DNA from: Hyaloraphidium curvatum SAG 235-1
Taxonomy: Eukaryota > Fungi > Monoblepharomycota
DNA length: 64,000 nucleotides
Assembly (NCBI GenBank): GCA_025558095.1
Contig: JAIVFI010000009.1
Location: 186,001 to 250,000 of the forward strand
Direction of reading: 5' to 3'
Part shown: in pieces, positions 17,329 to 41,877 of the stretch
Numbering within the stretch: position 1 is the first letter of the stretch
Layout of the letters: every line of letters starts with the position of its first letter
Translations under genes and position numbers: made by a program
The notes under the pieces: model-generated
The model's database searches: none
Told to the model about the DNA's origin: nothing
Seen by the model: only the letters and a program-made list of their open reading frames with translations

Positions 17329-17757
17329 ATGGAACATCTGACCCACACCATCGTCGAGACCGCCAGGAAGATCCTCACGCCGCAACTTAAGTCCCTGCGG
17401 AAGCTTCCCGTTTCCTGCCAGGAGATGCGGCTCGTCTTCATCGTGGAACCGTTCGTCCTCACCGACGAGGAGTGCGCCCCGTTCTTGAGGGCCGTCGCAG
17501 AATGGATCCGCAAGGACAAGGCCAGCGTGGCCTACCTTGCCTATCTGATCATGCACCAGCGCACGAACGGCCGGGCTGATGTGGCGCGGAACCTGTTGGA
17601 AGCGATCCGGAAGGCCGCGGCGTGGGGCGCACCTTCGGAGGTACTCGACATGATGTTCGAGCTGGGCTCGGACGAGTTCTTCCTCGGCGCCAGAAAGAGA
17701 GAGAGCAGATTGAAGAGAAAGAAAGAAAAGCCACATAAGTTTAGAAAGCTCCTTTAG
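17329..17757 (+). CDS. Hypothetical protein, paralogue of 16527-17079 (possibly itself partial)
   Basis: LVFIVEPF...APFLRAVA...AYLAYLIMHQ...RADVARNLL...KAAAWGAPSEVLD. Confidence 0.55.
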   Translation: MEHLTHTIVETARKILTPQLKSLRKLPVSCQEMRLVFIVEPFVLTDEECAPFLRAVAEWIRKDKASVAYLAYLIMHQRTNGRADVARNLLEAIRKAAAWGAPSEVLDMMFELGSDEFFLGARKRESRLKRKKEKPHKFRKLL

Positions 17758-17773: not shown

Positions 17774-18570
17774 CTACCCCTCGCAAATGGTGCCGAGTCC
17801 GACCAAACCCCCAGCCCCCTGAAGATGCTCCACAGCCCCACCAGGATGGTGACCGAAGTCACCACGATCGTCCTCACGACCCCGAAATCCACCACGATGC
17901 CCCCGAACCGCCCGCGGTACCTGTCGCTCTCGAGGAAGCTCCCCAGCACGGCGTCGTGCAGCCGCAGGCCCTTTTCCCCCGCGGGGTTGGACTTGCCGGC
18001 CATGTGGGCCTCGTACAGGAGCTCCCGGATCTCGAGCTGCCCGGCGTGGTAGAGGGCGCGCACGTCCGAGACGCCCGAGTTGGAGGCGGCGAGGTTGGTC
18101 ATGTCCAGGAGCACAAGCAGAACGATGTAGATGAGGTAGGTGACGTTGGGCAGGGGGATGCACCGCTGGACGATCTGTGAGGGCGCTGACTTTAGGCACT
18201 GCTGCTGCGCTAACCTGCGGGACAGCACATGCCGAACTTTCCAACCCACCATTGTCACCAGTATCGCGGTAGCGACGATGGCGGAAGAGAGGATGAGCGG
18301 CGGAGACATGTTGAAGGTCGATATCCGGCTCTGCCAGACCCCCGTGAGGACCGAGTGGAGCTCCATGTACGTCTCACGCTTGTCGCCGTTGTCCGGCTTC
18401 GGCGCCGCCTCCAGCAGGAACGTGCGGTTCCGCGGGAGCATGGATGACAGGGCGCCGGCGACGGCCCGGTGGTGCAGCCTCCTCGAGAGCTCGAGCAGCG
18501 CGATCGACCCGCTGAACCTGCCCACGGTGGGTGGCACCATGAAGCCCGCGCAGATGGCGTGCGCCTTGGC
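17774..18570 (-). pseudogene. 5'-truncated member of the 7TM receptor/channel-like family (end of TM4 to TM7)
   Basis: Aligns to 38472-40003 (LSRRLHHRAV/LSNRVQERAV; ELHSVL/DLHSTL; CIP; LAASN/LATSN; TM7); in-frame intron 18175-18249; 1-nt frameshift at ~17803. Confidence 0.75.
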
Positions 18571-18912
18571 ACTACTTGTCCGCGCGTTAAAACAAGGCGC
18601 CACAGCAAGACCTCGATAACCACCTTATTTGGGTTGAGCTAGATGGAACTCTCCAAACCTTCCACGGCCGGGATTCTGACGAGGCACGATAGCCGGGTCA
18701 TGGCATGACCTGGAGAGGGATTAAGGGCCACAAGCGCGCCGATTCCGCGAAAAGACAATCTACTCGACGACTTGAGACTCCTCGATCTGGCCGCTTGCCT
18801 CTCGCGGCGCTTCCTTGGCTATGGGCGGGGAAGTGATCGGTGGGCGGAGTCGCGGCGTTGAGCACCCCCAAACAAAGCCCGAAGCTCGACTCCCCCAGAG
18901 CCCGCCGGGGCC

Positions 18913-21612
18913 ATGCTCCAGGCCATGGACGCCCTCAGCGTGTCGCCGCTGTCCGCCGTGTCGGGCTCGTCTGCGTCGCCGGCGTCGGCGGGCTCGCGCA
19001 TGACGGGCGCGTGGTTCGCCGAGCCGCTGTCGGTGCCGGCCGGGCCGCCGTGCGCGCTGAGCGCCGGCGGCGCCCCGTGGGAGCTGTGGGCTCGCGCGCT
19101 GCCGTACATCGACGACCCGGCTTCCTTTGCCGCCAGCTGCAGGCTGTTCCGGCGGCTGGCGGGCGACCCGGTGCTGCGGCGGAACTGGTTCGTCGCCCGC
19201 TTCGGCGCCGCGGGGGCGGTCCCGGCGCTGCTGTGGCGGCACCCGCGGCTGTTCACGCCGGCCGTCGGCAAGGCCATCGTCGCCGCCGCACGGAAGCACG
19301 CCGAGAGGCGGGGCTGGGGAACCGCCGTGCCGCGATGGTGGCTCCAGCTCGCGGTGCGGGGCCTGGTCGCCGCCGGATCGGCGCCATCTCCCCGGCTCCT
19401 GGCCAACGGAGTCGCGGACGCCGGGAACCAGGCGGACCAGGAGGTCGACATCGGGCAGCTTGCCCCCGGTGTGGGCGAGGAGTCCCCCGTGGTGCCCGGT
19501 CCTCCCGTGCCCAACAACACCCCGACGGATCCCCAGGCGATTGCCCTTCAGGTCTTCACCGACACCCCTGACAACGACGCAAATGGCCTGAGCCCCATTC
19601 CGCCCCTGATCCCGCTGTCGCCGGTGCTGCTGACCCGGGTCAATGTCGGCGGTGTGGAACCGATCCGGATCAATCTTTCGGGCAAGAAGGCCTCCGCTCT
19701 CCTTACATTCCTGGTCGTGCTGGCCAACGAGGAGTACGGATCCAAGTCGGAGATGACGGGGGACGACTTTGCCGAACTCATGGGAGCTCTTGGCCTGGCG
19801 CCAGAGGCCGACCGGCTCCGTGCCGACCCGGCCAAGTTCGTGTGGCCGATAAGGCTCGAACGGGAAGCCGAAAGCCCGATCGAGGTCCTCGAAGGAGACA
19901 CCGAGGACGACGCCGACATGAACGGGGACATTGGCCTGGCCGGTGTGCAGGCTGCGCCCGCCCAGGCTTTGCCAGCGGCCGCGCCGGCACCAGAAGCGGC
20001 ACTCCCTCCTCCCATCGCCCCACCCCCTCCGGCCCACAAAGTGACCTCGCACCTCCGCCGCCTCTTCGTGCACTACTCCCTGCCGCTCTCCTTCGGCCGC
20101 CTCCCCCTGCTCCCGGTGCACCCCGTCCCCACCCTCTTCCCGCATGGCCGCTTCTCCGAGGCCCCGGACCTGATGCTGCGGACCTGGAACCCGCTCTTCG
20201 AAGCCGCCCTCCGCGACCCCCGCCTGCTCAGCCGCGCCGTCGAGACCGGCCTGGACGCGGGCTACCTCGACGGCGCAGCGTGCGGCGAGATGGTCGCCCG
20301 CCTGGTGCTGCACGTGCGGTGGCGCGCTGAACCGGAGCCCGAGGTCGTCGAGGCCGTGCTGGACGCTTGCCTGCGGAGGCCCGTCCACCGCACGTGGCCT
20401 CGCGAGCCGGTGCTGGACGACGGACAGGTGGCGTGGCTGCTCGAGCGGCTGGACCTGTTCGACGATGAGCTCTGCGCGCCGGCGTGCAGGGACGTTGCGG
20501 CGGCGTGCAGGGTGCAGGACACGGCGCTCGGGGGGCGGGACAAGGACGCGGGGCTGGTGGCGGCGTCGCTGGCGTTCCTGAAGCAGAACCCGACGTCGCT
20601 GTTTGCCCTGTTTGAGCGGTTCAGGGGGCACCTCGCGGCGCCCGCCGCCGCATTGGAGGCGTTCTTCGCCGAGGAGAACATCAGAACCGGGGCTACGAGG
20701 AACAGGTTCGTGACGCCGTTCCAGGTGGCGAGGAAGCTGGCGAGCTACCTGCCCGTCTGGGACGGAATGAGGGAGGTCATGGCCGACTACGTCGGGTCGA
20801 GGTGTGTTGCTCCTCATCATTGGCAGTTTCGACGTCTAACAGCCTGCCTATTTCTCAGATCGACTACGGTCGACATGTTTTCCGCCCTCTTCCCCTTTGC
20901 CGACTCCAACCGCCTCTCTGCCCACCGCGACCTCTTCACCCTCGCCGGCGTCCCCTTTTCCGACGCCATCGTGCTCTACGCCTCGTCCTCCGGTTTTCTC
21001 CGCACCGACCCCCGCTTCCACCGCGACATCGTCACCCGGCGCTGGGCCCCCTTCCTCCCCCCCGGTGGGCCCGAGCGGTGCGCCCGCGGCCTGCTGGCCG
21101 AGATGCGTTCGAGCGTCGAGGACTTTGCCGTGCACGGCCACGGCGAGCCCCGCCCGCTGGGCCTGCTGGGCGAGGTCTCGGTGCTCTTCTACCGCGCGCT
21201 GTCGTACCCCTTCGAGTGGCTCGCCGAGGCGTTCCCCGCGCTCAGGGAAGACGCAGTGGACGTGCTCGTGCGGGCAATTGCGGCGGGCAGCGGGATCGGG
21301 AAGCTCCGGAGCGGGGTGGCCGAGGCCACGGCGTGCCTGCGCAAGTGCTGGGAGACGTCGCCCGGGCTGGTGCTGGATCCGGAGCTGATGCACGCTGCGA
21401 GGCGCACCAGGGCCGCGTTCCCGGAGGACCGCGAGTTTCTGAAGGTGTTTTTCGAGATGGCGAGGGAGAGGGTGCGGTCGTGCGGTGCCGAGGAGAAGGA
21501 CAAGTGGAGGGAGGCGGCAGAGGGGATGGCGAGGGACAAGAGCGGGGAGGGCGGCGGCGCACTTGGGTTTGGGTGGTGGTTGAGCAGCATGCTGTTGCCC
21601 GATCTTCGTTAG
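18913..21612 (+). CDS. Large hypothetical protein with N-terminal F-box-like motif
   Basis: PWELWARALPYIDDPASFAASCRLFRRLAGDPVLRRNWFVARFG; long GC3-rich ORF; probable in-frame intron 20802-20858. Confidence 0.65.
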   Translation: MLQAMDALSVSPLSAVSGSSASPASAGSRMTGAWFAEPLSVPAGPPCALSAGGAPWELWARALPYIDDPASFAASCRLFRRLAGDPVLRRNWFVARFGAAGAVPALLWRHPRLFTPAVGKAIVAAARKHAERRGWGTAVPRWWLQLAVRGLVAAGSAPSPRLLANGVADAGNQADQEVDIGQLAPGVGEESPVVPGPPVPNNTPTDPQAIALQVFTDTPDNDANGLSPIPPLIPLSPVLLTRVNVGGVEPIRINLSGKKASALLTFLVVLANEEYGSKSEMTGDDFAELMGALGLAPEADRLRADPAKFVWPIRLEREAESPIEVLEGDTEDDADMNGDIGLAGVQAAPAQALPAAAPAPEAALPPPIAPPPPAHKVTSHLRRLFVHYSLPLSFGRLPLLPVHPVPTLFPHGRFSEAPDLMLRTWNPLFEAALRDPRLLSRAVETGLDAGYLDGAACGEMVARLVLHVRWRAEPEPEVVEAVLDACLRRPVHRTWPREPVLDDGQVAWLLERLDLFDDELCAPACRDVAAACRVQDTALGGRDKDAGLVAASLAFLKQNPTSLFALFERFRGHLAAPAAALEAFFAEENIRTGATRNRFVTPFQVARKLASYLPVWDGMREVMADYVGSRCVAPHHWQFRRLTACLFLRSTTVDMFSALFPFADSNRLSAHRDLFTLAGVPFSDAIVLYASSSGFLRTDPRFHRDIVTRRWAPFLPPGGPERCARGLLAEMRSSVEDFAVHGHGEPRPLGLLGEVSVLFYRALSYPFEWLAEAFPALREDAVDVLVRAIAAGSGIGKLRSGVAEATACLRKCWETSPGLVLDPELMHAARRTRAAFPEDREFLKVFFEMARERVRSCGAEEKDKWREAAEGMARDKSGEGGGALGFGWWLSSMLLPDLR

Positions 21613-37433: not shown

Positions 37434-38319
37434 CTACGGTCGTTTCATCCCCGCCAACAGATCCGCCAACGCACCCTTGAGGATCACGCCGTCCACCATC
37501 AGGTGCTTTGCCTTCACCCCGCATCGTTCCACGGCTTTGGCGGCTTTGTCGGCGTTACGCAGGCCGTCGAGGTCCAGGTATTCGACCGCGATGCTGCGGA
37601 GATTCGGGTGCAGATCTGCTTCTAGCCAAAACGACGGCATGTACTTGGCCTCCAGGCTCTGGATCGAAGGGCAATCGAGGACTGCGGACCATGCTTCCTC
37701 AAGCTCGTGCAAGATCTCGAGGCTCCCCTCGTACTCCTGGTACTCGTCTTCCACCACAACTTCGGCCGGCTCAAAGCCGGGAACCTGTGTGGCAAAGAAA
37801 GTGAACGTCGTCCAACCTCCGCTCGAAAAGCGCCTGATCAAAGGTGCGAAATCAGGGGGCAGGTTCTGCGTCAAATTGCGGCGCTGATCCTCTGATAGGG
37901 GGCCGAGTGGGTACTCTCCCGAAAAGAAGGAGAGATGGATCTTCCGGAAGGGGGGGGGGGGGCGGGGGGAGGGAAGGGAAAGGAGAGGGGAGGGGGGAGG
38001 AAGGGAGAAAGGGAAAGGGGAGGGAGGGGGAGGGGGGGTTCGGCCCCACGAGGATCTGCGCGTCCGAGCGGAGCAAGCTTGCCCTCTCTGCGAGTTGCGA
38101 AAGCAGTGAAAGCGCGTCGCTGGCGGCCGCGAGCTCGGAAATCGCGTGCCGCAGCTCGACTTCAGCATCGGGCCCGAGATGCTCGTCGCGGCGTGCCTCG
38201 GCCCGGGTGGCCTCCAGTTCGGCGGCGAGGGCCGAGAAAGACGCATCGAAATCCGAGAACAGGAGTTTGGCGCGGGCCGTCAGCGCTGCGAGCGGTTTGA
38301 GCGCGCTGGCGGGCGACAT
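37434..38319 (-). pseudogene. Coiled-coil + LRR-like family member interrupted by a low-complexity tract
   Basis: N-terminus LAALTARAKLLFSDFDASF similar to the 2308 and 40468 genes; C-terminus CPSIQSLEAKY...HPNLRSIAVEYLDL parallels FLEELEADY...RRLRRLRVGCFDL. Confidence 0.55.
37947..38040. repeat. Pure G/A low-complexity tract (similar tracts at 21820-21880 and 26787-26900)
   Basis: Almost only G and A on the + strand; interrupts a reading frame. Confidence 0.8.
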
Positions 38320-38471: not shown

Positions 38472-40003
38472 ATGGTCGTGGACGACGAGACGGAAGTCGC
38501 TGACGACCCTCTCGGGCCTGTGCCGAAGCACGGCGGCCTGTTCACCACAGACGAATGGGCCGTGATCCTCCCGTCGTTCTCGCCTGACGAGGTGGAGCAC
38601 CCCTTCACTCTCCCGCGCACGCCGCAAAAGCGGGATGAAGAGGACCTTCCGCCGCAGCGAGGAAAGCTGCCGGACCTTTCGGCCTTTCCACATCTCCAAC
38701 GCGCGGCTGCGTTCGACGCCAAAGTTCTCGGCTCGAGAACATTCCTTCGTTTCGCCGTCGTCCTCCAAGTCGTCGGCTATTGGGGATGTGTGACCCCGCT
38801 GCTTGCGACGGGATGGCTCTATGGACCTCCTCGGTACTCGTCGCGTGCCGTGGCCGCGGGATTTGCCGCACTTGCGTGGTCGAACGCGGTATCTCTGCTG
38901 CTTCTCATGGTTTCTATCCTCATTGCCCCCGGACAACCCGCGTTCTACGGCTGGGCGCTCGAGATGGCCTCGAGATGGAAGGCACTCGCCAGCCGCGACT
39001 CGTTGCTGCTCGAACACCAGGATGACGACACACGATGCCCGTGCGAGAAGTGCGCAGGCAAACTTCCGGAATTGGCAGGGCTGTTGCGGTTCCCTGTGGG
39101 CATTGTCGGTCTTTCTCTCATCATGTTGGCTGGATACGTTGCTCCCCTTTGGAGCCCTATCGTCGTGTTTGCAGACCAGGTGTGGACATCTCCCTGGGCG
39201 GTGCCTGCGACCATCGGCTTCCTTGTGCTTCTTGTGGGCCTTGCGCCGGGGAGTTTTGTGTTCAATCCTGGAAGCGCGGCGCTGGTCAACCTCTCCAATC
39301 GCGTTCAGGAGAGGGCGGTCCATATAGCCCTCCGAACCACCTTTGCTTCCTTGCGTACGCGACTGGATGGCTCTGCACCCGGGCACGACGACCCTGACAG
39401 TCTTCTTTCGAGAGACTTCCTGCTTGATCTCCACTCGACGCTCCACTCCCGCCTCGCAAAGCGTTGGTCCGTCGTTGCCCGGGATTTTGCCAGCTCCCGT
39501 GTCGCCTTTGTGCTCATGTTCCTTTCGTGGACCGTTGCCGCCATCATTCCCGCCACCATGTCGGGTTGCATTCCCGCCTGGGTGATCCTCAACATTGTTG
39601 CCCTTGCCCTCCATATCTTCGGGGACTTGGTTTTGCTCGCAACGTCCAACGAGGGGCCAGAACGGGCGGGGAAGCTCTACAAGCAAGCGCAGGAGCTGGC
39701 GCAGGAGATGGCAGGTGTTGCCAGGTGCCGCGGGCTGGACGTGGCGGGCGAACTGCGGGACTTTGCTGCGATCGCCGGGTTGTACACCGACGTGCAGGCC
39801 ACGAGGTGCGTACCAGGACACATGCTGTCAAGCGTGGTCGCTCACATTATTGTTGCAGGGCGAGACTCTGGGGCTTCCCGATCCATTGGGCCTTCTTGAG
39901 GACCCTGACCGCCACGTTGTTCACTCTAGGTGTCGGCATGTTCACGTTGATCCGTTCTGCTGGCGTGACGTTCACGATGGAGACCTATTGTCCTGTTACG
40001 TAG
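38472..40003 (+). CDS. Seven-transmembrane protein, putative GR/OR-like (7TMIC) receptor-channel; intron 39806-39858
   Basis: Seven hydrophobic segments with alternating short/long loops; CPCEKC in a long loop; C-terminus RARLWGFPIHWAFLRTLTATLFTLGVGMFTLI. Confidence 0.75.
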
Positions 40004-40468
40004 CTATTCGGTCTATGTAACACGAGGAAGAATCGCGGACTGGTAGACAAGATGGTCAACTTCTTCAGCGCCGGAAAAGCCATTTCCGGCCGCTCTTCCC
40101 CTGGACTCCGTTGTACGAAGCTAAACGCGACTTCGAGATCATCGAGATCATTGAGGAGGGGAAGCGTCAGGGCCGCAAATGCCTCATGATCACGCACGTC
40201 CGAGATGGTGCACCGCAGGCGCCGCAGCTGCTGTGCACCGGAAAGCAGTCCGGCACTGACTGCTTTGGCGAGAGAAAAGTCTTTCAGATCGAGCTCCCGG
40301 ACAAGCGAGATCGTCTTCTGCACTTCCAGGTGCTCCTGCAAAAGGTTCCGCGCCACCGCCTCGCCGCTCTTGCCCGATCTCAACGAGCTCCGCCGCCTTC
40401 GCGTTAAGAGACGCGTGCAGCTCGGCGGCCAGGAGCCGCGCCCGGGCCGCGAGTTCGGTGAGGGACAT
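39985..40468 (-). pseudogene. Internally deleted and frameshifted coiled-coil + LRR family member
   Basis: MSLTELAARARLLAAELHASL; other frame LRRLRCTISDVRDHEAFAALTLPLL matches LRSLDCVLQDVDDLAAFAFLSLPQL of 1080-2308. Confidence 0.6.
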
Positions 40469-40594
40469 CCCTCACTTCGGACTCGGTGGGGGCGCGGAGC
40501 GGCAAAATCTCGCGTGCGGACCCGATCTCTCCACCACGCAAACGCCGTCGCCATTTCCGCCCCGCGGTACCTCGTTCGCGCCGCTGGCCTGGCG

Positions 40595-41877
40595 ATGGCC
40601 GCCGCGGGCATCTCCGCCGCCGCATCGGCGGCCCCCGTGGCAGTGGACAGGCCCGCCGGGCCGAAGGCGCACCACCCGGCCCAGAAGGGCGGCAAGTTCG
40701 TGAATCCCTGGCAGAGCTACTCGGCACACGGCACGTCGGACTTTTTCAAGCTCTTTTTCGGTGGGCTCACCGCCGAGATGCGCTCTGTCGGCCCACCCTG
40801 ACTGCCCCTGTCGGCCCTCCCTCACTTCCCCTGTCGGCCCACGCTGACTTCCCCGGCAGGCTCCGAATGGGACCGAGAACGGAGCAAGCCTCCCCCGGAA
40901 AACCAGCGGGTTCCCGTCATCAAGCCCAATTTGGACCTCATCCGCCGCTTCCACTCCGACTCGAAGGGGGGAATCGCCGCCACTTGGCTCGGCCACGCTT
41001 GTTTCTTGCTCCAGCTCGGCGGCCTGAACGTGCTCGCGGACCCGTGCTGCTCGGAGCGGTGCTCGCCCTCGCAGTGGGCGGGCCCTAAGCGGATCCGGCC
41101 CCTTCCTTGCGGCCTGGAGGAGCTAGCCAACGTGGACGCGGTGGTGATCAGCCACAGCCACTACGACCACCTGGACGTCGGAACGATCGAGAAGATCGGC
41201 AAGGGCGCGACCTACTTCGTGCCGCTCGGGATTGGGGCGTGGTTCGCTTCCAATTTCCCGGGGTATCCGGTCCGCGAGATGGACTGGTGGGACTCGTCCT
41301 CCCTCGCGCATCCTTCGGACCCGAAGCGGGGCGTCGAGTTCACCTGCACGCCGTGCCAGCACTTTTCCGGGCGCACGTTGTGGGACCGCGACACGACGCT
41401 GTGGAGCTCGTGGTCGCTGAAGGCGCTCGATTCGGGGCGGAAGGTCTTTTTCGCCGGCGATACGGGCTATAGGTCGGTGCCCAAGGGGTTCACGGGCGAT
41501 GTGGGCAGCCTGCCCCACTGCCCGGCCTTCAAGGAAATCGGCGACCGCCTCGGGCCCTTTGACCTCGCCGCGATTCCGATCGGTGCCTACTCTCCGCGCT
41601 GGTTTATGAGCCCCGTTCATCTGGATCCCAGGGTAAGTCCTTCTTTGGACTCTCATCCATCTTTTGCCCATGTACTGATCGGGATTCGCAGGACGCTGTG
41701 GACGTTCACCGCGACGTGAGGTCGAAGAAGTCTGTCGGGATGCACTGGGGCACCTTCATTCTGACGGACGAGCCGGTGATGGAGCCGCCGATCCGGCTGG
41801 CGGAAGAGGCCGCCAAGGGCGGGCTGGGGAAGGACGAGTTTGTGGTGGTAGACATTGGCGCGACGCTGGTGGTTTAG
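40595..41877 (+). CDS. NAPEPLD: N-acyl-phosphatidylethanolamine phospholipase D (metallo-beta-lactamase fold), 2 introns
   Basis: FVNPW, TWLGHA, ISHSHYDHLD, CQHFSGR, FFAGDTGY, IPIGAYSPRWFM, GMHWGTF. Confidence 0.92.

Follow-up and report, generated by a model that had tools for sequence, protein, structure and literature searches.

We describe here a gene on a 64,000-nucleotide stretch of DNA, referred to below as the window, from the freshwater fungus Hyaloraphidium curvatum SAG 235-1 (GenBank assembly GCA_025558095.1, contig JAIVFI010000009.1, positions 186,001 to 250,000 of the forward strand). The gene, at 38472-40003 on the plus strand of the window, belongs to a large family of paralogues, and its product is predicted to have the fold of the seven-transmembrane ion channels (7TMICs), the class that includes the insect odorant receptors (ORs), gustatory receptors (GRs) and Orco. 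The reading frame runs from an ATG at 38472 to a TAG at 40001-40003, and the spliced product of 492 amino acids is the NCBI hypothetical protein DFJ74DRAFT_661889 of H. curvatum (492 aa), called P0001 below. The two exons were searched separately, and all full-length work was done on P0001, which is identical to exons 1 and 2 read in order. An earlier note on this DNA, made from its letters alone, had placed an intron at 39806-39858, and the match to the database protein shows that this gene model is exact. If the intron were retained, the frame would terminate at 39899 and the last helix would be lost. Alignment to paralogues that have no intron restores the family motif at the splice junction with zero gap, which supports the splice sites. 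The intron sequence has a single match in the genome, and the close paralogues (L002-L004, L006 and L008-L012) align in one frame across the seventh transmembrane helix (TM7, the helices being numbered TM1 to TM7), the intron being absent from them; it therefore looks like a gain in this gene copy. In one respect the note fell short: it ended the protein at ...GMFTLI, whereas the chain has 16 more residues and finishes in an invariant Cys-Pro tail.

The extent of the family is apparent from searches at two levels. Against 1.84 billion representative proteins, a profile of the family gave 435 matches at E<=1e-3, of which 378 reached E<=1e-10 and 248 reached E<=1e-30, and ten proteins sampled across the top 150 of these matches were all hypothetical proteins of H. 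curvatum. Within the 31.9-Mb genome of the organism, a six-frame search with exon 1 gave 91 matches among the 95 scored of 470 candidates, and with the family profile every one of the 86 candidates that were scored, out of 896 at first look, matched at E<=1e-89. About 80 of the latter are full-length single open frames, five contain an internal stop, and copies are dispersed over most contigs. Judged by these matches, the family comprises about 400 paralogues in H. curvatum, and it is likely to be restricted to this organism. The genome-wide expansion that had been surmised from the window alone is thus real, and much larger than was implied. Metagenomes scanned with an alignment of a four-member clade gave no relatives, and a word-index protein search with either exon 1 or a 90-member alignment returned P0001 alone, the index being blind to the family.

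The paralogues are strongly diverged. Identity to P0001 is typically 20-28%, and among the members generally it is about 20-40%; in the family tree (FastTree) the terminal branches have lengths near one change per site. P0001, P0003 and P0038 form a small, well-supported clade on a long stem. One relative, L007 (G000:C16:546569-550162), is 38-39% identical to P0001 and is split over three reading frames, so that it is either frameshifted or interrupted by several introns; an adjoining match at C16:547761-548081 contains an internal TAG. Some members form pairs, tandem or head-to-head, with a spacing of a few kb (for example C14:77108/78936, C39:391481/393576, C19:88527/92060 and C14:38285/40326), while most are spread across nearly all contigs, and many of the listed copies are no more than about 100 kb from where a contig starts.

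Kyte-Doolittle hydropathy of P0001 gives seven hydrophobic segments and no N-terminal signal-like segment, as had been read from the letters, and the helices of an AlphaFold2 model, built on an alignment of 90 family members and assigned with DSSP, agree on seven. The model is a confident one, with a mean predicted local distance difference test score (pLDDT) of 89.3 and a predicted template-modelling score (pTM) of 0.89. The loops alternate in length. Those between TM1 and TM2, TM3 and TM4, and TM5 and TM6 are very short (in P0001, YGPPRYSS at residues 118-125, ADQVWTSP at 234-241 and SGC at 364-366, as the note had them), with means over the 90 members of 11, 10 and 5 residues, the C-terminal tail averaging 14; the TM2-3, TM4-5 and TM6-7 loops average 70, 70 and 66 residues and, as the note had also proposed, are helical in the model. 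The density of lysine plus arginine is 0.118 in the long loops and 0.047 in the short, and in 89 of the 90 members the long loops have the higher value. By the positive-inside rule this enrichment places the N-terminus inside, and the N-terminus and long loops are accordingly predicted to be cytoplasmic, the reverse of the arrangement in G-protein-coupled receptors (GPCRs). The topology that the note expected, with seven helices and the N-terminus inside, is therefore the one predicted here. TM5 and TM6, at 51 residues each, are about twice as long as one membrane span, and in the model the long TM4-6 helices project below the bundle, which is also seen by DSSP in a model of a second member, P0147. 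TM7 is split, with one helix at residues 424-438, a break at 439-454 that contains Gly450 (conserved in 88 of 90 members), and a second helix, TM7b, at 455-478.

Eight residues are invariant in the 90 members, namely Pro34, His182, Cys189, Cys191, Cys194, Cys366, Asn393 and Cys489, and a further five (Gly450, Arg459, Thr467, Arg477 and Gly480) are nearly so. Conservation scores are highest in the TM5-6 loop (0.70), TM7b (0.61) and the TM7 hinge (0.58), and lowest, at about 0.30, over TM2-TM5. One face of TM7b carries a stripe of small or polar residues (T460, T464, T467, G471, S/T474 and G/S478). Four of the invariant residues form a cluster in the cytoplasmic TM2-3 loop, with the family form His-x6-Cys-Pro-Cys-x2/4-Cys, which is probably a zinc site. 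The remaining two cysteines, Cys366 and Cys489, are likely to form a disulfide that ties the C-terminal tail to the TM5-6 loop, since the model pairs the strand at 366-368 with that at 482-484 on the outer face and both cysteines are invariant. The location of three cysteines and a histidine inside, and of two cysteines outside, is consistent with the predicted topology. We know of no counterpart of either the His-Cys3 cluster or the outer cysteine pair in animal receptors.

Evidence for the 7TMIC fold comes from structure comparison. When the P0001 model was searched against the PDB with Foldseek, all but two of the rows listed to rank 23 were insect OR or GR chains (probability 0.77-1.00), with no match at E<=1e-3. 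In a PDB ranking, all eight OR/GR/Orco cluster representatives took ranks 1 to 8 of 48,161, with 85-90% of each chain aligned in the order TM1 to TM7. The structure tool carries the caveat that helical models can reach such Z scores by arrangement alone; the assignment of the fold carries weight because the top places go to one small family, whose chains are covered almost completely and in order. In the ESM Atlas there were four good matches over 357-379 residues, with template-modelling (TM) scores of 0.55-0.57 by query (0.53-0.68 by target), and the next row fell to 0.25. Among the four is the plant family DUF3537 (PF12056), with TM-scores of 0.56 by query and 0.62 by target over 361 residues; a language-model search of the Atlas also lists DUF3537, at a recognition score below the reliability mark, and is a weak lead. 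P0147, which is only 21% identical to P0001 (model pLDDT 88.7), gave the same structural matches. No GPCR or transporter appears among the top 50 PDB structural matches. The features by which 7TMICs have been recognized (Benton and Himmel 2023, PMC9998090) are found here, namely seven transmembrane helices, a predicted intracellular N-terminus, longer intracellular loops, long TM4-6 and a split TM7. The earlier note had taken the protein for a divergent 7TMIC and not a GPCR, and had expected insect OR, GR and Orco chains to be the best structural matches; they are, and its reading is supported by the topology, these matches and the Atlas match to DUF3537.

Structure comparison also touched on viruses. 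The best viral matches, in BFVD, are uncharacterized giant-virus proteins of about 440 aa, A0A3G4ZRZ0 (Edafosvirus) and A0A1V0SCD1 (Catovirus), with probabilities of 0.98 and 0.93 and TM-scores of only 0.27-0.33, and one of the good ESM Atlas clusters (row 2) is partly from Nucleocytoviricota. From such models, giant viruses may carry 7TMIC-like proteins.

Searches at the level of sequence named nothing. The Pfam families 7tm_6 and 7tm_7 gave no match at E<=10 for the exons of P0001, nor at E<=1 for the 90 members; Pfam as a whole named no family for either exon or for the 90 members, and the family profile matched none of the sequences in the PDB. Run over the whole genome, the hidden Markov model (HMM) of 7tm_7 (PF08395) gave 0 matches, with a control likewise silent so that its sensitivity is unknown, and that of DUF3537 (PF12056) gave no match either. 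The HMM comparison with 7tm_7 and DUF3537 that the note had suggested, made here as profile-to-sequence searches, was thus blank. The animal GR and GR-like (GRL) proteins share a TM7 motif of four conserved positions, T-Y-h5-Q-F. In a register that we assigned ourselves, one of the four is kept in the H. curvatum family, as Thr467 (T in 89 of 90 members), the others being V/L, S/T/G and V/I/L.

The window contains one further copy of the family, the sole other match of the profile search (hmmsearch, E=5.8e-45). Its identity is 28% with P0001 and 42% with P0072, the nearest listed paralogue. A 25-codon in-frame insert bounded by GT..AG lies at 18249-18175, the final residues, including the family cysteine, are read in the +1 frame, with their end at 17774, and the part corresponding to TM1-4 was not found anywhere in the window. 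This copy is a truncated, frameshifted relic. The second, highly diverged member that the note had reported does exist, on the minus strand, but as a relic and not as an intact gene; its presence fits birth-and-death turnover. An open reading frame (ORF) of 899 aa (18913-21612, plus strand) begins some 310 nt upstream of the relic, and another of 142 aa (17329-17757, plus strand) is antisense to its read-through tail; neither has a Pfam match. The P0001 gene is flanked on one side by a 270-aa ORF (37434-38246, minus strand) and on the other by a 236-aa ORF (39985-40695, minus strand), again with no Pfam match to either; the 3' end of the latter overlaps the last 19 nt of the P0001 gene, the two genes being convergent. 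Beyond it, an ORF at 40931-41719 (plus strand) encodes a metallo-beta-lactamase-fold domain (Lactamase_B_2, E=6e-33) and probably represents a single exon within a larger gene. Features of the P0001 gene and the relic are collected in Table 1.

Table 1. Features of the P0001 gene and of the second family copy, in window coordinates; residue numbers are those of P0001, and helices and sidedness are predicted.
Feature	Coordinates	Strand	Remarks
Exon 1	38472..39805	+	Codons 1-444 and two bases of codon 445; codes for the N-terminus (cytoplasmic), TM1 to TM6 and TM7a; matches P0001 residues 1-445 at 100% identity
Cytoplasmic N-terminal motif F..EW..I.P, conserved	38541..38573	+	Residues 24-34; Pro34 invariant; short model helix 26-32
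TM1	38736..38822	+	Residues 89-117; hydropathy and model
TM2	38841..38924	+	Residues 124-151; hydropathy and model
His182-x6-Cys189-Pro-Cys191-x2-Cys194 cluster, long TM2-3 loop	39015..39053	+	Invariant in 90/90 members; pLDDT 97 in block
TM3	39060..39167	+	Residues 197-232; hydropathy and model
TM4 and cytoplasmic continuation helix	39198..39365	+	Residues 243-262 and 269-298; the latter with near-invariant R277/R281/A282 motif
TM5	39411..39563	+	51-residue helix 314-364; first half projects into cytoplasm (anchor-domain-like); model
TM5-6 external loop, very short	39564..39575	+	Invariant Cys366; model beta-bridge of 366-368 with 482-484 of C-terminal tail
TM6	39576..39728	+	51-residue helix 369-419; invariant Asn393 at membrane/cytoplasm boundary; model
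TM7a-like cytoplasmic helix	39741..39785	+	Residues 424-438; model
Intron	39806..39858	+	53 nt, phase 2; GTGCGT donor, CTCAC branch-like site, TTGCAG acceptor (GT..AG)
Exon 2	39859..40003	+	Hinge with conserved Gly450, TM7b, external tail with invariant Cys489, stop codon
TM7b	39887..39958	+	Residues 455-478; conserved more than any other helix of the family; R459 and R477 at its flanks
Second family copy, relic	17774..18603	-	Profile positions 254-483 only (post-TM4 to TM7b)

The reading that we favour, with a probability of about 0.6, is that the P0001 gene codes for a subunit belonging to a lineage-specific family with the 7TMIC fold and about 400 members, and that this family would act as a repertoire of ligand-gated channels for many chemicals. 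The argument draws on sequence, on models and on analogy with the insect receptors. As in those receptors, four subunits would assemble through the cytoplasmic bundle of helices from TM4 to TM7a, the small and polar face of TM7b would line the central pore of the tetramer, and the variable outer half of TM1-TM6 would form a ligand pocket that differs between paralogues. Conservation of TM7b and the hinge, together with the variability of TM2-TM5, suggests just such an arrangement, in which the pore helix is common to the members and the helices of the ligand pocket have diversified. A more ambitious version, which we put forward only tentatively and hold at somewhat under even odds, is that H. 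curvatum independently built an OR/GR-type ligand-gated channel repertoire of about 400 members, equipped with a His-Cys3 metal module and an outer disulfide, and that this would make it the first organism outside the animals with a large chemoreceptor-like expansion of 7TMICs.

Several observations weigh against a channel repertoire of this kind. By sequence, none of the methods applied connected the family with a Pfam entry or with a chain of solved structure. Foldseek E-values lie at only 0.02-0.1, and against the solved chains the TM-scores are no better than 0.30-0.46. A four-copy model of residues 265-492, built without the family alignment, gave an uncertain chain fold and no answer, in either direction, on the tetramer. 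Both ends of TM7b carry basic residues in all 90 members, which is unexpected at the mouth of a cation pore, although these residues may face lipid head groups instead. The channel and chemosensory roles are inferred only. Finally, H. curvatum is a non-flagellated unicell, so that a chemosensory repertoire would have no obvious process to control.

The most serious alternative, which we nevertheless regard as unlikely, accepts the 7TMIC fold and denies the ligand-gated channel: the proteins would be non-conducting receptors, adhesion or self/non-self markers, transporters of lipids or small molecules, or proteins of intracellular membranes regulated through the His-Cys3 cluster. All of the evidence on the fold applies equally to this possibility, the basic flanks of TM7b and the absence of acidic residues from TM7 sit well with it, and so does the lack of a flagellum. 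It may be added that most 7TMICs from outside the insects have no proven function (PMC9998090). Against it, TM7b and the hinge are conserved whereas TM1-TM6 vary, which is what one would expect if a pore were common to the members and their ligand sites had diversified; the stripe on TM7b fits a pore lining, and the cytoplasmic helix bundle, which is the site of tetramer contact in ORs, is retained.

It is improbable that convergence or a generic likeness explains the resemblance to insect receptors, the family being an unrelated, novel seven-helix bundle. The scores given above are weak, but the first eight places of 48,161 are held by OR, GR and Orco representatives with the order of helices kept, and this was repeated with a member only 21% identical. 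The Atlas matches to DUF3537 (0.56/0.62) are followed by a sharp drop, the language-model search lists the same family, though weakly, and the topology, the pattern of loops, the long TM4-6 and the split TM7 all fit a 7TMIC. Still less probable is the idea of passengers without function, in which the copies would form a decaying repeat family or one borne by mobile elements. Relics do exist, as seen in the second copy of the window, in L007 with its three frames and in the five of 86 copies with an internal stop, but the great majority of scored copies are intact over their full length, members with no more than 20-40% identity still share eight invariant residues and a fold modelled with confidence, the family is scattered over most contigs, and the genes beside the P0001 copy have no transposon-type domain. 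A GPCR-type receptor with its N-terminus outside, like those of the fungal Pth11, Git3 or Ste2 classes, would account for the seven helices and the large family size only and is scarcely credible, given a predicted internal N-terminus in 89 of 90 members, no GPCR among the 50 best rows of any PDB structure search and no GPCR Pfam family at E<=1 in the 90 members.

On the favoured reading of a 7TMIC channel repertoire, the closest known systems are the insect OR, GR and Orco proteins of 7TMIC Class-A (for example AaegOR10, 8v02; MhOR5, 7lic; BmGr9, 8vc1; Gr43a, 8jm9). The H. curvatum family differs from these in having no detectable sequence similarity and only the threonine of the GR TM7 motif, in the 70-aa TM2-3 loop that bears the invariant His-Cys3 cluster, in the invariant cysteine pair of the TM5-6 loop and C-terminal tail, in the N-terminal F..EW..P motif and in the basic residues that flank TM7b; it also occurs in a non-flagellated fungus without neurons. 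The plant DUF3537 proteins have a similar predicted fold, and the motif of TM7 can for the most part not be recognized in either, but they number 4-12 genes per genome (PMC7746228), compared with about 400 here. As regards the Class-B (PHTF-like) 7TMICs, the Atlas neighbours of the family are DUF3537 and animal-type clusters, which are Class-A-like; the preprint on Class-B proteins (bioRxiv 10.1101/2023.08.30.555482) describes no large expansion.

Among fungi, 7TMIC candidates had been found in Spizellomyces as a single gene in each of two species, SpunGRL1 and SpalGRL1 (Benton et al. 2020, PMC7746228). These too come from early-diverging fungi and, as in the H. curvatum family, conserve one position of the TM7 motif. 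They were found by PSI-BLAST and DELTA-BLAST from animal GRLs, whereas the H. curvatum family is invisible to such searches; the two are compared here by description only. The summary of Himmel et al. 2023 (bioRxiv 10.1101/2023.08.30.555482) gives only Chytridiomycota and Blastocladiomycota as fungi with 7TMICs, and their screen did not recover the earlier chytrid proteins. Elsewhere outside animals, 7TMICs are described as single genes or small families, with six in Thecamonas, six in Vitrella and the 4-12 DUF3537 genes of plants (PMC7746228). In the literature on 7TMICs since 2023, and in that on Hyaloraphidium with receptors or expansions, we found no large fungal expansion and no description of such a family, and a large non-animal 7TMIC family was not found in any of the literature searched.

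A repertoire of about 400 members has, in the same literature, been found reported for the 7TMIC fold only in animals. If the favoured reading is true, this fold can undergo explosive birth-and-death expansion that is not tied to nervous systems, and the resulting sequences can become so diverged that sequence search gives no link to the known 7TMICs; whole families would then still be escaping structure-based screens. The family would also offer a simple microbial system in which to study gating, assembly, ligand recognition and diversification in this class of channel. For H. curvatum itself, on the more ambitious version of the reading, such a repertoire in a non-motile unicell would point to the sensing of nutrients, kin, prey or parasites, and not to smell based on neurons.
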